From the NCBI GenBank assembly GCA_038496445.1, contig JALMLS010000310.1:339023-403022 (forward strand): a stretch of DNA of 64,000 nt, given 5' to 3'. This stretch comes from Trichosphaerium sp. ATCC 40318 (taxonomy: Eukaryota; Protista; Tubulinea). Positions 2,110 through 55,366 of this stretch are shown here, piece after piece (position 1 is the stretch's first letter; each line of letters opens with the position of its first letter). A model generated the notes under the pieces. That model was not told the origin of the DNA. It saw only the letters and a program-made list of their open reading frames with translations, and ran no database searches. Both the position numbers and the translations under genes were made by a program.

Positions 2110-4517
2110 ATGTGGCAGTGGAGTGACGATGCTGGTGGGTGGAGGGATTATGATAAAGAGAGAAACAAAATTATTGAAACGGCGTTTCAAGCGAAACAGC
2201 CTTCAGCAGCTTTAACAATCAATGGAAACGCGTATAACGTTGTTTTTCAAAAAAAGGTGCTTATGAGAGTCCTCTGGGAGGAGTTCCTATCAAACCACTT
2301 TAAAATCATGTAATTACGCCTATTTAGATACGTCAAGTCCGTGTTGATGATAGTTTTTACTACAGAGACGTTCGTCGGTTAGTAGAGCAGGTAGGAACTA
2401 GAGGAAACAAAAAATAAACGTGATTTAAATAATTAAAGGCTGTAGGGTGAGAAGACTGTTGTGTGGGTAGACGACAACCCTCACAACAATGAAGGCCTTG
2501 TAAATGAAATTACAGCATCAGGTACTTAAAAAATTATGTTTCGCACGTGACTAACAAATTGTCCAGGTATTAAAGTAGTTCAGTTAAAATCAACTTGTGA
2601 AGCAATAAAGTACTTTCAACGCGATGATCTCAACACAGAAAATATGCGTGTTGTAAGTGATATGGCACGTGATGAGTTTAGTCCATCTTCAGACCGTAAA
2701 GAGATGATTACCACTGCTGGTGTTTTGCTTGCAAGACGTTTAGCTGTAGAACTTGACGTTGACGTATGCACTTTGTATTTTTTTTACTCTTCGATTTACT
2801 CAGTTTTGAAAGATACCTTACTTGATTTTTACTGGTGACTACTGGCAAGATATTATTAAAGAAAGATGGCCATTCATTAGATCATGCACTACAACACAAG
2901 AATGTAGGGATTTCATTACCTTCAAAGACTTGAGCCTTAGCGGTTTAGTAACGAACTTTGAAATGTGTATGTGCTTTAAAAAAAACAATAAGAGAAGCAC
3001 AACTAACACGATTTTAGACAGAGATCCAACCAGGAATGATAAAGAAGATTATCCATCATATTGGACACCATTCAGAGTAATTAAAACCGAAAACTAGCAC
3101 TCCACTTTGAACTAAAAGACTTTTTTAGGAACATGCTGATGTAGTAATCGACAACGCAACTGAAGAGTTTAAGTGTATAGATAGATTAATGAATGGAACT
3201 TTGAAGAAAAATCACGCGTATGGTGCGTACAGACGTGTGCCAAATGACTTACACCTCTACTTTTTTTGTTGATATTAACACGTGCAACCAAAACAGGCAA
3301 GTTAAACAACACGTTTCCATCAAAATATAAAGTGACACGTGTTGTTCGTCTGCAAGATGTAATGCAATGGAAGTTATATAATGTTCAGAGAGAGAAAATG
3401 CAAAGACAGCATAAAAAATACAGAGATACTCCAGGTACACCAACAAACATATCACCATCTGTTTAACAATTTCAAAAAAGGTTACAAAGAGACTTGCAAA
3501 CTACTTCGAGATAATCCTATCGAGACATCAAAATATAGCCAACAAGATATGAATAAAGATATAAGAGAAGTATACTTATTCCACGGAACAAATATATCAA
3601 CTACAATGAAGATAAAGGACCTTGGTTTTGATAACCGCGTTGGCAAAGTATCAGGTAAAATCAACTTTTTGATGTTTTTTGGATTTCTTGGTTCGAACGC
3701 TTAGATCCAATGCTCTTTAACGCACCAGCAATATTTTAAAAACCTATATACAAGATTAAAGCATCCGCACTGTATTTCCTAAGCGTCTTTACAATAAACC
3801 ACGTGACTAATGTTATTTATTAAAGGTATGTTCGGCGGAGGCGCATACTTTGCAGACGTTTCTAGTAAGGTAAGTCTAGCATTATATTAAATGATCACAA
3901 GTCAAATTAAACTAAATATACCCAACAGTCAGCACAGTATATACCTTGTTCTACTTGTGAAGGAGGCAACTACTTTAATAAAAAAAGGTGCACTTGCACG
4001 TGCAAAGAGGATCAAAAGGTACACAAGAAAAGAAAATACTAACCACAGCTACATTCAAAGAGAGCGTGGGCTATTACGAATACTAAATGAGGTGCTAGGA
4101 TTTGTGTATGATTGTTTCAAGGGTTTTACTTGGAGACTTTCATCTCGTTAAGAAGTACGATGAAAAGACATATAAAGGAACTACAAAGCATCCTGTGCGT
4201 ATATTGACGTGCTTTTTAGCATCTATAAATAAAGATGACGTTCATTAACGGAAAAAAAAACTAAAGCAAGCGTTAGGTTCGTCGTCCTCCTAACAAAGAG
4301 GGTTTAAATGGTATCACGTATGACTCTGTAGTCGCTGAGAGAAAGGAATGGGACGGATGTGTTGAATGGAGGGAGTTCGTGATTTACGACAGGTGCGTCG
4401 AATTGACGTGCTTTTTTTTTTGTTTTAGCGTAATTTATAGCGTCAACGCACTCACCGAAATGCTGTAGGAACCAGGCTTACGCCGAATACCTCGTTTATT
4501 ACAAACGAGTTTTGTAG
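2110..4517 (+). CDS. ADP-ribosyltransferase (PARP, tankyrase-like catalytic domain) with N-terminal WWE and receiver (REC)-like domains
   Basis: WWE: WQWSDDAGGWRDYD..IETAF. REC-like: VVWVDDNP..VVSDMAR..IPYLIFTG. PARP: YLFHGT, GMFGGGAYFADVSSKSAQY, WREFVIYDRNQAYAEYLVYY*. Many short introns. Confidence 0.88.
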
Positions 4518-46930: not shown

Positions 46931-47618
46931 GGTTTATATGAGGAGATGTGTTTGTCTTTGTAGTATTATTGTAAAAATGGGTGACACGTGATTTCTTTCA
47001 TACATTGAATATTTCTTGAAATAGTACTTGGGTATGTCGCGATTCTTCTCGATCGTTTAGACACTCAGTACCTTCATTGTATTGTATAAAGGAACGCCGA
47101 GTTTTAAAGGGATCATTGAACTATTTTGAAGCTTGAATTGACTCCGAAAGACCTCACAAGATCCTTTGAGTCTTAATATTAGCATCACCTTTTGGCGGAA
47201 TATCTGAGCATCACCGTGGGCCTTAAAAACGGCTAAATTAGTTTGATATTACAAGATTGTTCAGTGAACAATGCGCACAAAATAACTTAGTTAAAGCATC
47301 GCCAACAAATTAAGAACTTCCAAGAGAGGTATGGAAGCGCCTACATCACAAAGATACAAAGTTAAATATTGTTTTACAATACAGAAATAGCAATGTAAAC
47401 ACGCTGCTCCATGATGGTGTCATGTACTAAAGACAGTTGTTTAATGTACATGTACAGCTTAGAACTATATTGTTCCACAAATAGAATAAAATGGAATAGA
47501 CAAAGGCGTTTCTTTAACCATGATGTGTTATTGTCTATGTGAAGTATTTTCAAGTATGTTGTGGATAATGAGTGAGACCCGCAATTACTCAACGGATATT
47601 TGTTACGTGGTTTATTGT

Positions 47619-50600
47619 TTATAATTGTAGAGTCATAGGTTGTTTAAAGACTTGTACTTGCGTTGTTTTAATAATGGTAACTGTATCTCGTAGAACAGGA
47701 TGAAGTGTTCTCAAGTAAGCAACAACATCATCACTTGTTCCTTCTTTTAAAACAAAATCATGTCCGTCACAAGCATGACGTACAAACCAATCATGACACA
47801 TCATTCCTATAATCTCTCCTTCCATATGCATTGTGTATTCTAGTATCTGTAAAAAGACATCAAGGCATTCAACGCCACATTGATGTTTTACAAAGCCTGA
47901 TAAAACATATCCTTTCATTCTTTCGATTTGGTACTTATCACTTAACTTGTAAAGCATCCATAGAGTATCTATATCGTTTAAGGGAATGCTGTCTTTGTAT
48001 AGATAATCCAATAAAAGGTTGACGACATGGAGAGGTTCACCAATTTTGATGACATTAGCATTCTTATCTGTTGATTGATTTGATACCAGAATTTGTTCAA
48101 AGAACGGTATGCGTGCTACTAAGATAACCTAAAACAATACAATCAGATATTATATTACAATACTACGAGCCATCACAGTATTGGCTAGATAAAAGAAAAC
48201 TCGGAACAGTAAACAAAACAAAGAAAAAAAGTGCAAAAAGAAATAATGTACCTTGTGACACTTCAGTTCGTTGTCATCACTAGTCTTTAGAATTAAGTCC
48301 TTTGATTCCTCATGCTTGTATAGTCTATTTAAAGATCTTTTGATACCCTTCGAATTGATAAAGTAACATCCTGGCTTGGTCCTTTGGATTTCTTTTACGA
48401 GCTTATTCGTTTTAAGTGATTGTAACAGTTTTATAAATGAAGGTTCCGTTAGGTCATCGTATTGAACTGATTTGCCATAAATACAAGAAATAAGACAATT
48501 GAACGCTCTAGAAGAATGGTCAAGCTTCAGGACAGAATCGATTTCTCCAGCATCTACAAACAGTTCAGGCACTTGGCTCTCGACGAATACCTAAAAAAAG
48601 TAAGTTACAAATGTGTTTTTGCTTTTTTCTTACCCTGCTGATCTTAATTGATGACTCTTGGTTTAGTTTAAACTCAAAGTCATTAAACACTTCATATTTA
48701 TCTTCTCTGAGCCTACTAAACTCTGATGGAATTTTAGTAGCATCGCTTAAATCAGGAAACAAGTAAGACTTAAATGACTTTCCAAATCGAGTTTCAGGCT
48801 TCGCTTTACTCTCCTCAGTCTCCTCTTTCGAAAATGTGAGTATTTACATAAAATTATTAGTAGTGAGGTACCTCCACGTCTTGTCTTATAAGCAATTTTC
48901 TCAATTATGCGAACCAAGGGAAAGTGCAAATCGAACTCTGTTAGTGTGCTGCAAATGAACATTACATTGTATCTTCCTTTATTAATAGTCTTTTTCAAAT
49001 CTTCAATGATGTGTAAGACAATTTCATCAACATCAGATGAACCTTAAATAAAAATAAGCAAACAAAGTTATAGGCATTGATTGAACAACTGATATCGATC
49101 AAAAGAAAGAAAAAAATAGGAATATTCTTGTATTGTGGTCTAAGGGCTCTCAATAAATTAAATTTTCTTTTTTGTTTAATTTATGGGATCAATAAGGCAT
49201 GTTTTTAACGTACCTTTGTAGTGTGGAAACATTTTTTGGAATTTAACGAAGTTCTCAGGCATTAACTTTTTGAGAAGATCATATTTTGATAAAACTATAA
49301 TGACGCTGGCATGTGCTAACCATTTACTGCTAATTAGTTCTGAGAGTAAAACCTTCGCTTCTTCGTATGAATTTGTTTGTGCATCTTCATACAACAAGTA
49401 CATGAAGCTTGAGAGTTAAAGACAAAACAAAAAAAGAAATTCCAATAAATTTACAAAGTCACAACACGTAAACAACTATGGATTAGTGTCTTGCCTATGC
49501 CTTACTTTGAGAACAATTCAAAAAAGATACTCGGTCAGTGACACCACATGGCAAATATAATGTACATTTCCAAAGCAATGTAACCATTTTCTCCGTTCAT
49601 TTCGAGGACCTTAATAAATAAAAACTTAGACCAACTGCACAAAATAATAAAAAGTAGCATAAGCCTTCAACACAACAATGCTTTCACAGCTTATAACAAA
49701 AAACTCTAATTTTAATAAACAAATACTAAAAGAAAAGTATTATTGAGTACTGAGTAAAACGTGGTAAGCCTGAGGAACAAATACTTTTAAAACTAAAAAA
49801 GACGTACCACCAACATCCAAAAGCTTAAACTGTTGACCATTATGGCCTAAGTACTCTTTTTCTACAATCCCTGTTGTCCTTATACGTACATTCATTATTT
49901 CAGGTATTGTTACTTCCCATCCTTTAGTTCTTTTTGCAACAGCGTTCATTAAACTGAATAGAAAAAGTTTAGTAAGAAAGTTCATTTTGTATTCATTCTA
50001 TTTTCAGCTTATATATCAACGTACATAGATAAATTATGCATAGGGCTATTGTAAACAAGAGATTCTTTAAATGCAGTACATTCATCCATGAATTCTGAAT
50101 TGACGAGTCTGTAAAAATACTATTAACTTCTTTCTCAGAAAATTCTGTTTTTTTCTCCCTTTCACGTACTTTTTAACAGCATCAAAACAAGATTGCTCCG
50201 AGTCGAAATTATAATTGCAAGTACGATTAGGATCGTCTGGATCCGATAGACTCAAAATAGCGGATTGAGTGCTCTAGTTAATTAATTAAACCAAATCAAA
50301 GACCAGATCTTTAGCAGTAAGCCGTGCCTTCTGGCAACGATTAAAATAAGGACTTCGTTTAAAATCCTGTAAACAATTCCATATTTGATGTGTAATAGCC
50401 CTGTTGTAAGCTCGTCGGGCTTCTACATCCTGCTGAAGCAATTGTACGTAAAAATGCTTAACAAACGTAGATTTGCCTATTTACATGACTGAATAAGCTA
50501 ATAACCGCTTTTATTTCGTGCTAACCGCTGAATGCCGATCCTGGTGTGTATTAGTTTCAAATTAAATAACTGACGGTGTTTGATACGCCTACCAAGTACT

Positions 50601-50719
50601 AGAATCGTGATTTCGTCTATCTCTAGTTTTTTCGCTTCAATTACAGCTTTTTTGATAGATTTCAGTTTTCCAGCCTTATCTAGCCTGTCTACCGCATGCT
50701 TACATTTTTTGTTACCCAT
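47619..50719 (-). CDS. Atypical heterotrimeric G-protein alpha subunit fused to tandem BTB/POZ domains and a BACK-like region
   Basis: MGNKKC; ILVLGSAFSGKSTFVK; RIRTTGIVE; LLDVGGPRNERRKWLHCF; LYED..N; LSKYD; ICST. Spliced in frame to FNDFEFK..FNCLISCIYG (BTB1) and SKDLILK..LKCHKVILVARIPFF..LLDYLY..LSDKYQIERMK (BTB2). Confidence 0.85.
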
Positions 50720-51168
50720 TTCTGGACTTGTAAGCGTTGATACTGAAATAATTAAGACAAATCTGTTTCACTTAATTGCTTTCTTGAGTGCTTAGAAGGT
50801 AAGCTTTTGGAAAAGCAAGGTTTCGTGATTACATTCGTTTACATAAATATAGGCTTAAGTAACAGCCTAAAAAGTGTGAACTCCTTCAAGCACCTATCTA
50901 ATTTCTGGATTTTGTTTAAAGTCAAACGCACAATGTAGTAATGTGATTAGTCTACAATTTATGTCAAATGCATGCTAATATTACCACGTGTTTTTTATGC
51001 TAGACAGTTTTAGACTTGCAACTTCTTTATTTGGGAAGCTTGATCTAACGCCCTTCCGTTAACATAAATACTTTATTTAGTTCTGCAGTAGATTCAAAAA
51101 CAGACGAATTTCTCCGCCACATTCACTTGACACCAAGCCTTCAAAAAGATGGTTTCTAGTAATTGGAG

Positions 51169-52199: not shown

Positions 52200-54619
52200 C
52201 TATCTTTTTCTTTTTGCATCAACACGCACTTTACCACTATCAGAACGAACATCACAGAATTGATAATACGCCTCTAGGTTTGATACAAAAAGAGTAGAAA
52301 CAACAACATCTGATGCTTCTGGACTCACGTAAACACCATAAGCAGCAGGGAACGAAGTAGGGTTAAGTATACCATCATGAACAAAACTCTTTCCTGCGTT
52401 AATAAAATGAACTTCAAGATCTCTTAGTTTAACATCTGAGGAATCTGTCATAACATCAAACCCAATACCGTATCCAGCTACAGTAGATACATCCCTTACT
52501 TCGGCTCCAGTTACTACAACACTATTTGATCCTGAAAAAGAAAATCCACGAGCGCTGGCACCACCTTAAAGAAAAAAATGAGAACAATACTGAAAATAAC
52601 AAAACAACAGGCGTGCAACGCTAGTTCTCTATGTAGTTGAAACGTACCATAACCTGTAAGAGTTGCTCCTGGATGAGAAATAGAGTAACGACCACATTTC
52701 GATGATCCAATAGCTCCTTGATTAATCAATCCCTTAACAGAAACATCCTGCATTTTGACACCTGAAGCGCCGTCCATCTTAAACCCAATAATACCCTTAT
52801 TAACATGGAACATAGAGTCTCCATTACACAAATATCCCTTTATAGCAGAAAGCTTAGAAAGCTTGGCTTCAGGTGTACCAGGAGTAGCTTCAATCCAATC
52901 AAGCACAAGTTGGTCGATTGTATTCCTTCCATTGTCGAGGTGAAAATTATTGTCGAAATCTCCAGCTAGTTTTGCTTTGGCTATAAACGCTTTCGCGTTT
53001 GTGAGAGGATTACCAATATACTCGGCTTGATCTTCGTCCTCAGACGAAATAGTAATCAAGTTTCCAGTAGCTGGATCTCTGTTCCAAATTTGGAAGAGTG
53101 AACCGACAGAGTCTCTTACAGGTACTACACGGAAACAAAATAAGAAAACAAGTACTACCGACATAAAAATACGCTATGCGGTATACATACCTTCTGTGCC
53201 AAGAGCGACAATTTCGTTTACGGCGTTATGCAAGTCAAAAACGTGTACGTTGTTGAATTTAACATCGAATGAGAAGGAGTCGTAGTTTGTTGACAGAGGT
53301 TGTCTTGGGAACCCACCAACGGCAACGCCGAAGTTATTTACCAAGAAACCATATGCGTTACCATCAATAACAGAAAACTTGTTATGAAACAAAGCGTATT
53401 CAGCTGGATATTTCGTTTTGCTGATTTTAGAGTTTCCATCAACAATAAGATCAGTATGGACATTATTGATCATAGTACGTAGTTGCTGCGTTATTTTTGT
53501 AACATCCAAGACATTACCTTAATAGAAGTGAGTACAGAGAGAAACAAAACGTGATATTTAGAAACGTACCTTGTACAGTCAAAGTTGTGGCAGAGTTTGA
53601 AGAAACCAAGAAATCTAGGTACTTCTGGATAAATCTCGCTCCAGAGTATGTTCCTAGAACAGGAACATCCTTTCTGTTTGTTGCCGTACAATCACTAACA
53701 GTTAATTTATGAACACCATTAAGTGCTACAGCAGCGACTTCAAACTCATCAAATTCGATATGTTTTATAGTAATCTGTTCGTTTTGGTTTCCGTGAATAC
53801 CATGATGAGAAGAACGTCCAATACGACCTAAAGAACAAATTAATAAAGTGATTTTGACAAAGTACGATGCAAAGCGGCAAGCGATTACAGCCTGACATCG
53901 CAAGACAGAAAGATTAATCAAAATAAAACAAGTTTGGGGTTTTTTCGAGCACGTGAAGCTCAAAGGTCAGTGTACATACCATTCTTTATAGTAACTTTAG
54001 CTGCACCTTTGAATGTTGTACCAAAGTTATGAGGGCCTTGACCGACAACAAACGGTTTATCGGCAAGTTCAATGTTCGCGTAAAACCTTTGCAATAGCGC
54101 ATGTTCTTTACTTTGTTCAAGTGTATGACCATTTAAATCAAGAACGACGTCATCAGCAACTATTGAAATAGCTGCAAAGAATCCCAAAAATAGGCATTAT
54201 CGGGGTAGATACCACCTAATAACATTAGTGATGATAAAAAGAAAACAGAAACAAAATAGAATTCTGAAAAAAGCTCGAAAAGGCAAATCGGTAAACAACG
54301 ATTTTACATTTTTAGTTATCTATCTCTATTCTTACCTTGTGACTCAAACTGGCTTGGAAGTGGAAATGACGCATCCCAAGCATCGGTACCCAATGAAGAA
54401 GCACGATTTGGGTTGAAAGAGATATCTTCCATTAGTTTATACGTCCCTGGCTGGGAAATAATGTAAGTTCCATCAACAAAGTCTGCATTTGTAAGTTCGA
54501 AAGCAGCATCTAAATCAGACAACATTAGAGAGTTTCTGTATTTCTTTGCCTATATCGGGCTTACGAACTGAAGAAATCACCGCAACAAGCGCGTATATAT
54601 ACACTAATAACTTGTTCAT
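52200..54619 (-). CDS. Secreted right-handed parallel beta-helix (pectin-lyase-like fold) protein; 3' end approximate
   Basis: Signal MNKLLVYIYALVAVISS; ISQPGTYKLMEDISF, ISIVADDVVLDLNGHTL, VTIKNGRIGRSSHHGIHG, NGDSMFHVNKG and repeating beta-strand patterns. Confidence 0.75.
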
Positions 54620-55366
54620 TGCTGTTGCACCTTTTTTGTTGTAACTTGAGGTGATGCAAGAACGTTTCGTTTGAAAGAAAAAAATGTTATATTTAGCTTC
54701 GTTTGTCAAAAAAAAGCTACGTCGTTTCAAGGCATGTGTATTTAAGGTATGTATTAACGTAAAATGTATTTCATGAGGTTGTTCTGGGGTCATCTGAGTG
54801 AGCGTGTAAAGGTTCTTTTAAGAAATTGCTTCTTTAGTCGTTGCACGAAGTTCGAACTACGTGTGAAGCATTTAACTCTACGAAATAGTTTGTATCGTAG
54901 ATACGAAGGGGTTGTTACAAAGCTTGATTATCTGTTACACTTAAAATACTGCACACGATCTGATAGTCACGAAAACAACTACTGTTAATGTCTTTTATCG
55001 TTTTGGGCGTCTAGCCACTTAAAATGTAAGCCAATAGCGTAGTACGAAAATAATGTCGTATTAGTGTTAGTAATAACTACGATAGCGTTTTAATTGACAA
55101 AATACCAGTTTTCATGCTATAGACGGCTAGAATATCTTAAATCACCTACAAGTGATTGTTCCATACCCACCCACGCGTCAACATACTGTGTAGCGGTTCA
55201 CCGTTGAACTAGTTCAAATTACCTATGACAGTACGCAGTAGAGTCCTATTGCCATCATTGCATCGAAAGTGCTGTAGTACCAGCCTATTGAGTTTTAAAA
55301 CAAATTAGTAAAAAGGGAACAGAGATTTCAACATAAAAGTCGTTGACACATTTCTCCGTGCGGAAC

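Follow-up and report, generated by a model that had tools for sequence, protein, structure and literature searches.

A predicted G-alpha-BTB protein of Trichosphaerium sp. lacks the catalytic glutamine and carries its P-loop core on a 15-nucleotide exon

Does a G-alpha gene whose product has no catalytic glutamine encode a working protein, and is the minute exon that carries its P-loop core connected with this loss? Both questions arise from a gene in a 64,000-nucleotide (nt) stretch of DNA from Trichosphaerium sp. ATCC 40318 (assembly GCA_038496445.1, contig JALMLS010000310.1, positions 339,023 to 403,022), referred to below as the window and used for all positions unless another contig is named. 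The window consists of low-GC (~37%), intron-rich eukaryotic DNA. The gene lies on its minus strand and runs from the ATG at 50719 (MGNKKC) to the stop at 47619 in twelve exons, which give ~681-710 codons (depending on the splice model for exons 3 and 4) with a single terminal stop; its eleven introns are all of the GT-AG type with matching phases. An earlier note on this DNA had regarded the G-alpha part as a naturally GTP-locked enzyme or a pseudo-GTPase. Our analysis indicates that the gene is real and probably a functional member of a lineage-specific G-alpha-BTB family, in which the G-alpha would not cycle and the micro-exon would be an inherited feature. Database searches and profile scans were performed with single exons as queries, and codons were compared and stops counted across the exon list.

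The motifs listed in the earlier note, namely DVGGPR in switch II, GSAFSGKST in the P-loop, SKYD in G4 and RIRTTG in switch I, were all recovered when the minus strand was read again. Exon 6 ends with a G before the phase-1 donor gtacgt at 49808, and exon 7 opens at 49609 with GT CCT CGA. The proline codon CCT, which had been placed one base off (at ~49606-49608), was found at 49607-49605. It adjoins the codons for RNERRKWLHCF, which aligned with RSERRKWIHCF of Gq and thus assign the proline to the Q209/Q204 position; in the test for the G3 motif DxxGQ, DVGG was present, while the catalytic Gln was replaced by Pro. The codon is genuine and no read error, as the copy of the gene on contig C217 (77% identical) also has CCT and three copies that are 95.5% identical have CAT. 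A different acceptor restoring Gln, which would have overturned the claim, was sought and not found: an exon begun at the nearest AG further upstream would meet a stop, and with CCT directly adjoining the conserved RNERRKW codons there is no acceptor by which Gln could be placed. The P-loop GSAFSGKST keeps the Walker A pattern GxxxxGK(S/T), only when the 15-nt exon is included, and has lost the canonical GAGES core; its Gly equivalent to Ras G12 (G42 in Gi1) is Ala, and the E43-equivalent position is occupied by Phe. Switch I (RIRTTG, 49886-49869) was aligned by phmmer with RVKTTG of Go, and both the catalytic Arg and the Mg-binding Thr are present. In G4, SKYD (49289-49278) aligned with NKQD of Gs, with Lys and Asp kept and Asn replaced by Ser. 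The view that SKYD contributes to the crippling was not upheld, because the G4 Lys and the specificity Asp are retained and sister subfamilies read TKLD. This sequence is the normal G4 of Rac-type GTPases, and Thr or Ser at that position is normal in the Rho family.

The G-alpha module hence keeps the residues that contact the nucleotide and Mg2+ (GxxxxGKS-T, the switch-I Thr, DVGG, the G4 Lys and Asp), together with an almost canonical switch II helix. In this gene, and in the family described below, the sequence pattern is one of lost catalytic residues and conserved nucleotide and Mg contacts. The statement that loss of this Gln, including Q209P, blocks hydrolysis is documented for Gq: Q209L and Q209P of Gq/G11 prevent hydrolysis of guanosine triphosphate (GTP) and render the protein constitutively active (PMC9926304, PMC12033907). 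For the second position, G42V is cited in a preprint as drastically lowering the GTPase activity of Gi1 (bioRxiv 10.1101/795088). A deficiency in hydrolysis is consequently a well-supported prediction for the protein of the window. The gene is laid out as follows (all on the minus strand).

Exon 1, 50593-50719: start codon, MGNKKC (a possible lipid-anchor motif), N-terminal helix; ends with ILVL and base 1 of the first P-loop Gly.
Micro-exon of 15 nt, 50526-50540: the rest of this Gly, S-A-F-S and base 1 of the second Gly; phase 1 in and phase 1 out, with AG and GT flanks.
Exon 3, undisputed part, 50354-50476: GKST, then the beginning of the putative helical domain.
Disputed stretch, 50237-50353: in-frame TAA and TAG at 50288-50274; part coding or wholly intron.
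Exon 4, undisputed part, 50170-50236: putative helical domain; indels relative to the C217 copy are multiples of 3.
Exon 5, 50025-50108: putative helical domain.
Exon 6, 49808-49953: switch I RIRTTG at 49886-49869 and DVGG at 49817-49808, the last Gly being split by the intron; PF00503 positions 155-192.
Exon 7, 49531-49609: switch II, with the Pro codon CCT at 49607-49605 and then RNERRKWLHCF; PF00503 positions 194-219, E 1.2e-07.
Exon 8, 49214-49407: alpha3 to G4, SKYD at 49289-49278; PF00503 positions 220-281, 48.6 bits.
Exon 9, 48872-49042: divergent C-terminal part of the G-alpha with the G5 region (candidate ICST/CSTL); free of stops and continuing into the BTB exons.
Exons 10-12, 48824-48634, 48590-48252 and 48128-47619 (including the stop): linker and two BTB-like domains.

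The frame upstream of the ATG is not conserved: the close copies differ by an indel of 1 nt, and C217 has a TAG in frame. Scored exon by exon against PF00503, the G-alpha part gave 48.6, 31.7 and 17.7 bits; in the scan of the whole genome, the G4 exon alone reached 52.2 bits, which is above the curated cut-off of 48.8. The spacing between GKST and RIRTTG is ~114-143 residues, according to the splice model, and this stretch had no Pfam match exon by exon. As for the other end of the protein, the last exon matched the Pfam BTB domain with an E-value of 7.4e-07 and exon 11 did so weakly (0.01). The G-alpha part passes into the BTB exons without an intervening stop, through GT-AG introns of matching phase, and by this predicted join the GTPase domain and the BTB domain(s) would lie in one reading frame.

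The P-loop is put together from three exons. Exon 1 ends with ILVL and a G preceding the donor gtaggc, the micro-exon (GATCGGCATTCAGCG, 50540-50526) stands between ag and gt, and exon 3 begins at 50476 with GC AAA TCT ACG. The micro-exon is identical in the three close copies, and in C217 it is 53% identical, encodes SLRS and still measures 15 nt. A pattern search in the examined loci (an exon 1 end with G before gt; a 15-nt exon of the form G...G; a second short intron; then G-N AAR TCN) revealed a 15-nt phase-1/phase-1 P-loop exon in at least 10 further G-alpha genes. Those belonging to the family without the catalytic Gln have the cores SLRS, TCMS, ASMT, PSMS and PSKS, and the canonical paralogues L011, L014 and L017 carry the micro-exon with GPGESGKST or GAGESGKST and an intact DVGGQ. 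The flanking introns vary across the paralogues (43-86 nt for intron 1 and 48-107 nt for intron 2), and the exon is always 15 nt long. Judging by these gene structures, the micro-exon is real, inherited and constitutively spliced in the G-alpha genes of this organism and is not specific to crippled copies. The link that had been drawn between micro-exon and crippling is thereby removed, since the same exon carries canonical P-loops in DVGGQ paralogues. Its length is a multiple of three because the P-loop has a fixed length and both introns are in phase 1, and inclusion should be the default because canonical G-alpha genes with the same exon need their P-loop. For annotation, gene predictors that miss the 15-nt exon would mis-call every G-alpha P-loop in this genome.

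Two side observations concern the introns around this exon. The 49-nt intron 2 (50477-50525) is 90% identical between the window gene and C217, as against 53% for the micro-exon, 64-67% for the flanking exons and 72% for introns overall; it could hold a splicing element for micro-exon definition or represent a local gene-conversion tract. Moreover, in an Arf-like gene (L062; contig C114, ~3726-3900, plus strand) the P-loop core GLDNAGKTT also lies on a 15-nt phase-1/phase-1 exon, and the Arf-like loci L060 and L061 have an acceptor immediately before GKTT. The intron position in the P-loop may predate the G-alpha family, or its presence in Arf-like genes may be a parallel development.

A six-frame scan of the genome with PF00503 gave more than 150 exon-level matches, and motifs were surveyed in a subset of these loci. 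Most G-alpha loci of the genome show DVGGQ and a canonical P-loop. G-alpha-BTB paralogues occur on 15 contigs and fall into at least seven diverged lineages, and the Gln-less set shares with the window gene a phase-1 intron after DVGG, a G4 of the form (S/T)KxD and downstream BTB exons. In the resolved lineages (L063 and L064 excepted), the position of the Gln is taken by Ser in seven loci, Ala in one, Thr in one, Pro in the window gene and C217, and His in the copies on C459, C294 and C270. The third P-loop residue in this set is Ala, Leu, Cys or Ser and never Gly, and in the Ser-type members the switch-I Arg is gone as well. Retained throughout are GKS, DxGG (DTSGG in one lineage) and (S/T)KxD. 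Loss of the catalytic machinery appears from this comparison to be an old, family-wide trait. The best argument from sequence that selection still acts on nucleotide binding, and no longer on hydrolysis, is the persistence of the nucleotide and Mg contacts next to varying catalytic positions. The literature searched yielded no paper on a combination of G-alpha and BTB, and the family appears to be undescribed in it. Separately, two public library proteins from other organisms (P0005 and P0007) are short G-alpha fragments without the catalytic Gln, reading DVGG-S-RS with a G4 of TKTD, and GG-A-RSDRRKW; P0005 was considered as a product of this genome and rejected, as its best match there was 42%. 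G-alpha proteins that lack the Gln may therefore not be confined to this genome.

The genome (70 Mb, 642 contigs) contains four further copies of the window gene. Those on C459, C294 and C270 (loci L048, L049 and L050) are ~99% identical to one another and 95.5% identical to the window gene, and the fourth is the 77% identical copy on C217. None of the five has Gln at the catalytic position (CCT in the window gene and C217, CAT in the trio), whereas GKST, DVGG and SKYD are kept in all of them; switch I varies, reading RIWTTG in the trio and CMRSTG in C217, and the P-loop core is SAFS in the window gene and SLRS in C217. Because the Pro is common to the window gene and C217, which are separated by a synonymous divergence (dS) of 0.56, the loss of the Gln must be old. 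The similarity to the trio covers the 3.3-kb gene including its introns (window 47500-50860), begins ~60-140 nt upstream of the ATG and ends ~100 nt past the stop. The idea that the trio are haplotigs was rejected, because similarity confined to the gene indicates gene-sized dispersed duplicates. The ratio of nonsynonymous to synonymous divergence (dN/dS) was 0.46 for the G-alpha part and 0.38 for the BTB part when compared with C217, and 0.5-0.8 and 0.22, respectively, when compared with the trio. With C217 as outgroup, the changes in the G-alpha part were polarised into 4 nonsynonymous and 4 synonymous ones on the window branch and 13 and 5 in the trio. Divergence from the sister copies suggests constraint, with the window copy being the slower-evolving one.

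One junction of the gene requires a separate account. Between exons 3 and 4, the frame-keeping GT/GC-AG pairs were enumerated, and these were a 30-nt GT-AG intron (50303-50274), a 54-nt GC-AG intron and a 117-nt GT-AG intron (50353-50237). The 30-nt intron, which the earlier note's model implied, is shorter than all other introns seen here (at least 43 nt). The donor of the 117-nt intron is weak (GTCCTT), and its counterpart in C217 measures 137 nt and has a good donor, GTAATT. Only the 117-nt solution is in frame in all five copies, and all indels that are not multiples of three fall inside it, so we favour this intron, as judged by the alignment of the copies. The choice leaves the motifs discussed here untouched. 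An alternative genetic code with TAA and TAG read as Gln was also considered and rejected, since all the adjoining exons shift frame at GT-AG borders and indels of lengths not divisible by three occur there in the copies. In sister G-alpha-BTB paralogues (L056 at ~3086-3131 on the minus strand, L063, L052-L055 and L058), the exon with GKST is followed by a 45-48-nt intron in phase 0 with an in-frame stop at its end. Retention of that intron would therefore yield a truncated protein, a layout that matches the disputed stretch of the window gene.

Several observations weigh against a functional gene of the kind proposed here: (i) an in-frame TAA and TAG (50288-50274) lie between exons 3 and 4, every option for this junction is atypical (30 nt, or a weak GTCCTT or a GC donor), and the 30-nt model breaks the frame in two close copies and C217; (ii) relative to the trio, the dN/dS of the G-alpha part lies only moderately under 1, and in C217 the acceptor of exon 9 reads CG, not AG; (iii) a HMMER search in which exon 8 was compared with 1.84 billion representatives reached 48% identity at best, with no self-match, and a word search with the 169-residue BTB exon gave no match; (iv) exon 9 had no significant Pfam, PDB phmmer or BLASTP match in which the G5 motif TCA(T/V) could be placed, and the registers conflict; and (v) binding to Cullin-3, invoked below, is purely inferred. 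The first three also speak for a decaying pseudogene, in which the substitutions would reflect degeneration after duplication: the stops persist unless an atypical intron is removed, matches that could serve as evidence of expression are missing, C294 and C270 each have a +1 indel, and C217, which may be dead, has two of them (+1 and +1) in addition to the lost acceptor. Yet the 681-710 codons contain no other stop or frameshift, the remaining introns are GT-AG with matching phase, the 117-nt intron brings all five copies into frame, and the BTB part is constrained (dN/dS 0.22). Furthermore, the loss of the Gln predates the clade and is common to the other resolved G-alpha-BTB lineages, each with its own replacement residue, and the window branch has accumulated fewer nonsynonymous changes than its sisters. 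We consequently regard the pseudogene as improbable. An error in the gene model, with another acceptor restoring Gln or a spurious micro-exon, is scarcely credible, given the position of CCT next to the RNERRKW codons and the stop reached from the next upstream AG. In addition, exon 1 joined straight to exon 3 yields no Walker A motif, and the length, phases and splice sites of the micro-exon are conserved among paralogues despite their differing intron lengths.

The same conservation bears on a regulated skipping of the micro-exon that would toggle isoforms with and without a P-loop. Skipping would indeed keep the frame, as the earlier note had stated; the G of exon 1 would join the GC of exon 3 and leave LVLGKST. 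That is arithmetic only. The downstream 49-nt intron is unusually conserved relative to C217. However, no evidence for regulated skipping was found in the material analysed: the exon also occurs in canonical G-alpha genes that are unable to work without a P-loop, its divisibility by three is forced by P-loop length, and no significant RNA structure was detected around it (z = +1.47). The possibility is very improbable. A more serious alternative is that the G-alpha module binds no guanine nucleotide at all and acts as a scaffold in the manner of plant XLG2. The divergence of G5 supports this: exon 9 bears no recognisable resemblance to G-alpha, and the module may accordingly bind nucleotide weakly or no longer at all; by eye the motif would be ICST or CSTL according to the register, with the conserved Ala replaced by Ser or Thr in either. 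A bulky Phe at the E43-equivalent position and Ala at G42 point the same way, and XLG2, which lacks the catalytic Gln, sets a precedent of strongly reduced nucleotide binding (bioRxiv 10.1101/795088). Opposed to this, all five copies conserve GKS-T, DVGG, the Thr of switch I and the Lys and Asp of G4, and across the family GKS, (S/T)KxD and (in all lineages except the one with DTSGG) DVGG are constant next to variable catalytic positions. The nucleotide-free scaffold is thus a possibility to be taken seriously, though not the one we would choose. A protein that binds GTP and stays on is rated somewhat above it because the binding motifs appear conserved family-wide, even if the affinity of the module for nucleotide may be low. 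In the earlier proposal, the replacement of the catalytic Gln and of the G12-equivalent Gly stands, while the choice between a GTP-locked and a nucleotide-free state cannot be made from a G5 region that is unrecognisable.

If the non-cycling G-alpha-BTB protein favoured here is real, its G-alpha module would be unable to run a normal GTPase cycle and would be either permanently GTP-bound or, if affinity has decayed as well, a nucleotide-independent binder. Either way, it could hand G-protein partners over to the BTB domains at its C terminus, by analogy with RhoBTB and Cullin-3. In RhoBTB, the GTPase domain is substituted at G12 and still binds GTP, and the tandem BTB domains bind both Cullin-3 and the GTPase domain (PMC4931677). 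The two proteins share a GTPase domain followed by tandem BTB domains and a replaced G12-equivalent Gly; RhoBTB itself has no classical regulation by a GTPase cycle and recruits Cullin-3 through its BTB domains (PMC4931677). They differ in that the window gene encodes a G-alpha of the heterotrimeric type, with a putative helical-domain insert and MG at its N-terminus, and not a Rho protein. XLG2, a G-alpha homologue of plants, has no catalytic Gln and is changed in the P-loop and G5; it binds nucleotide poorly but still binds RGS and G-beta-gamma (bioRxiv 10.1101/795088). It resembles the present case as a natural G-alpha homologue with such substitutions that is fused to another domain, and it works in the absence of a normal nucleotide cycle (bioRxiv 10.1101/795088). 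In contrast, the extension of XLG proteins is N-terminal and is not a BTB domain, their lineage is unrelated, and they lack the nucleotide-contacting residues kept here (GKS-T, DVGG, the G4 Lys and Asp). With the oncogenic mutants (Q209L/P in Gq/G11, Q204L in Gi1) the gene shares a replaced switch II Gln in an otherwise near-canonical switch II, its Pro being the same as in Q209P. Unlike those mutations, the change is germline, old and, in kind, common to a family of paralogues, and it comes together with a missing G42-equivalent Gly, a G5 that has diverged, and the C-terminal BTB fusion. Finally, the canonical paralogues of the same genome share the P-loop intron positions and the 15-nt phase-1/phase-1 exon (L011, L014 and L017) and the phase-1 intron after DVGG (L008), and they differ in having G(A/P)GESGKST and DVGGQ where the window gene reads Ala at the one catalytic position and Pro at the other.

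Taken further, and here we are more tentative still than about the nucleotide-free scaffold, this amoeboid protist might possess a family of membrane-anchored, non-cycling G-alpha proteins, each with its own residue in place of the catalytic Gln and wired to BTB/Cullin-3 adaptors, with the permanently "on" surface selecting G-beta-gamma, receptors, RGS proteins or effectors for ubiquitylation. Should this doubtful proposal be correct, the family would be a G-alpha counterpart of RhoBTB, one without description in the literature searched, and the four-residue P-loop core, evolving fast on a 15-nt exon of its own, could in that case be a hot spot of diversification. Should the biochemistry hold, the gene would represent a natural and evolutionarily stable form of the Q209P-type tumour lesion, fixed in a G-alpha family and coupled to a ubiquitin-ligase adaptor domain. 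G-alpha would then have been recruited as a non-cycling recognition module, as have Rho proteins (RhoBTB, Rnd) and plant XLGs, and the residues found at the catalytic position (Pro, His, Ser, Ala, Thr) would offer a natural variant set for studying how the loss of hydrolysis is tolerated.

Upstream of the gene, at ~52200-54650 on the minus strand of the window, lies what looks like a separate multi-exon gene for a predicted secreted protein. Its product begins with what resembles a signal peptide (MNKLLVYIYALVAVISS) and contains long stretches rich in Gly, Val and Asp that are suggestive of a beta-helix fold.

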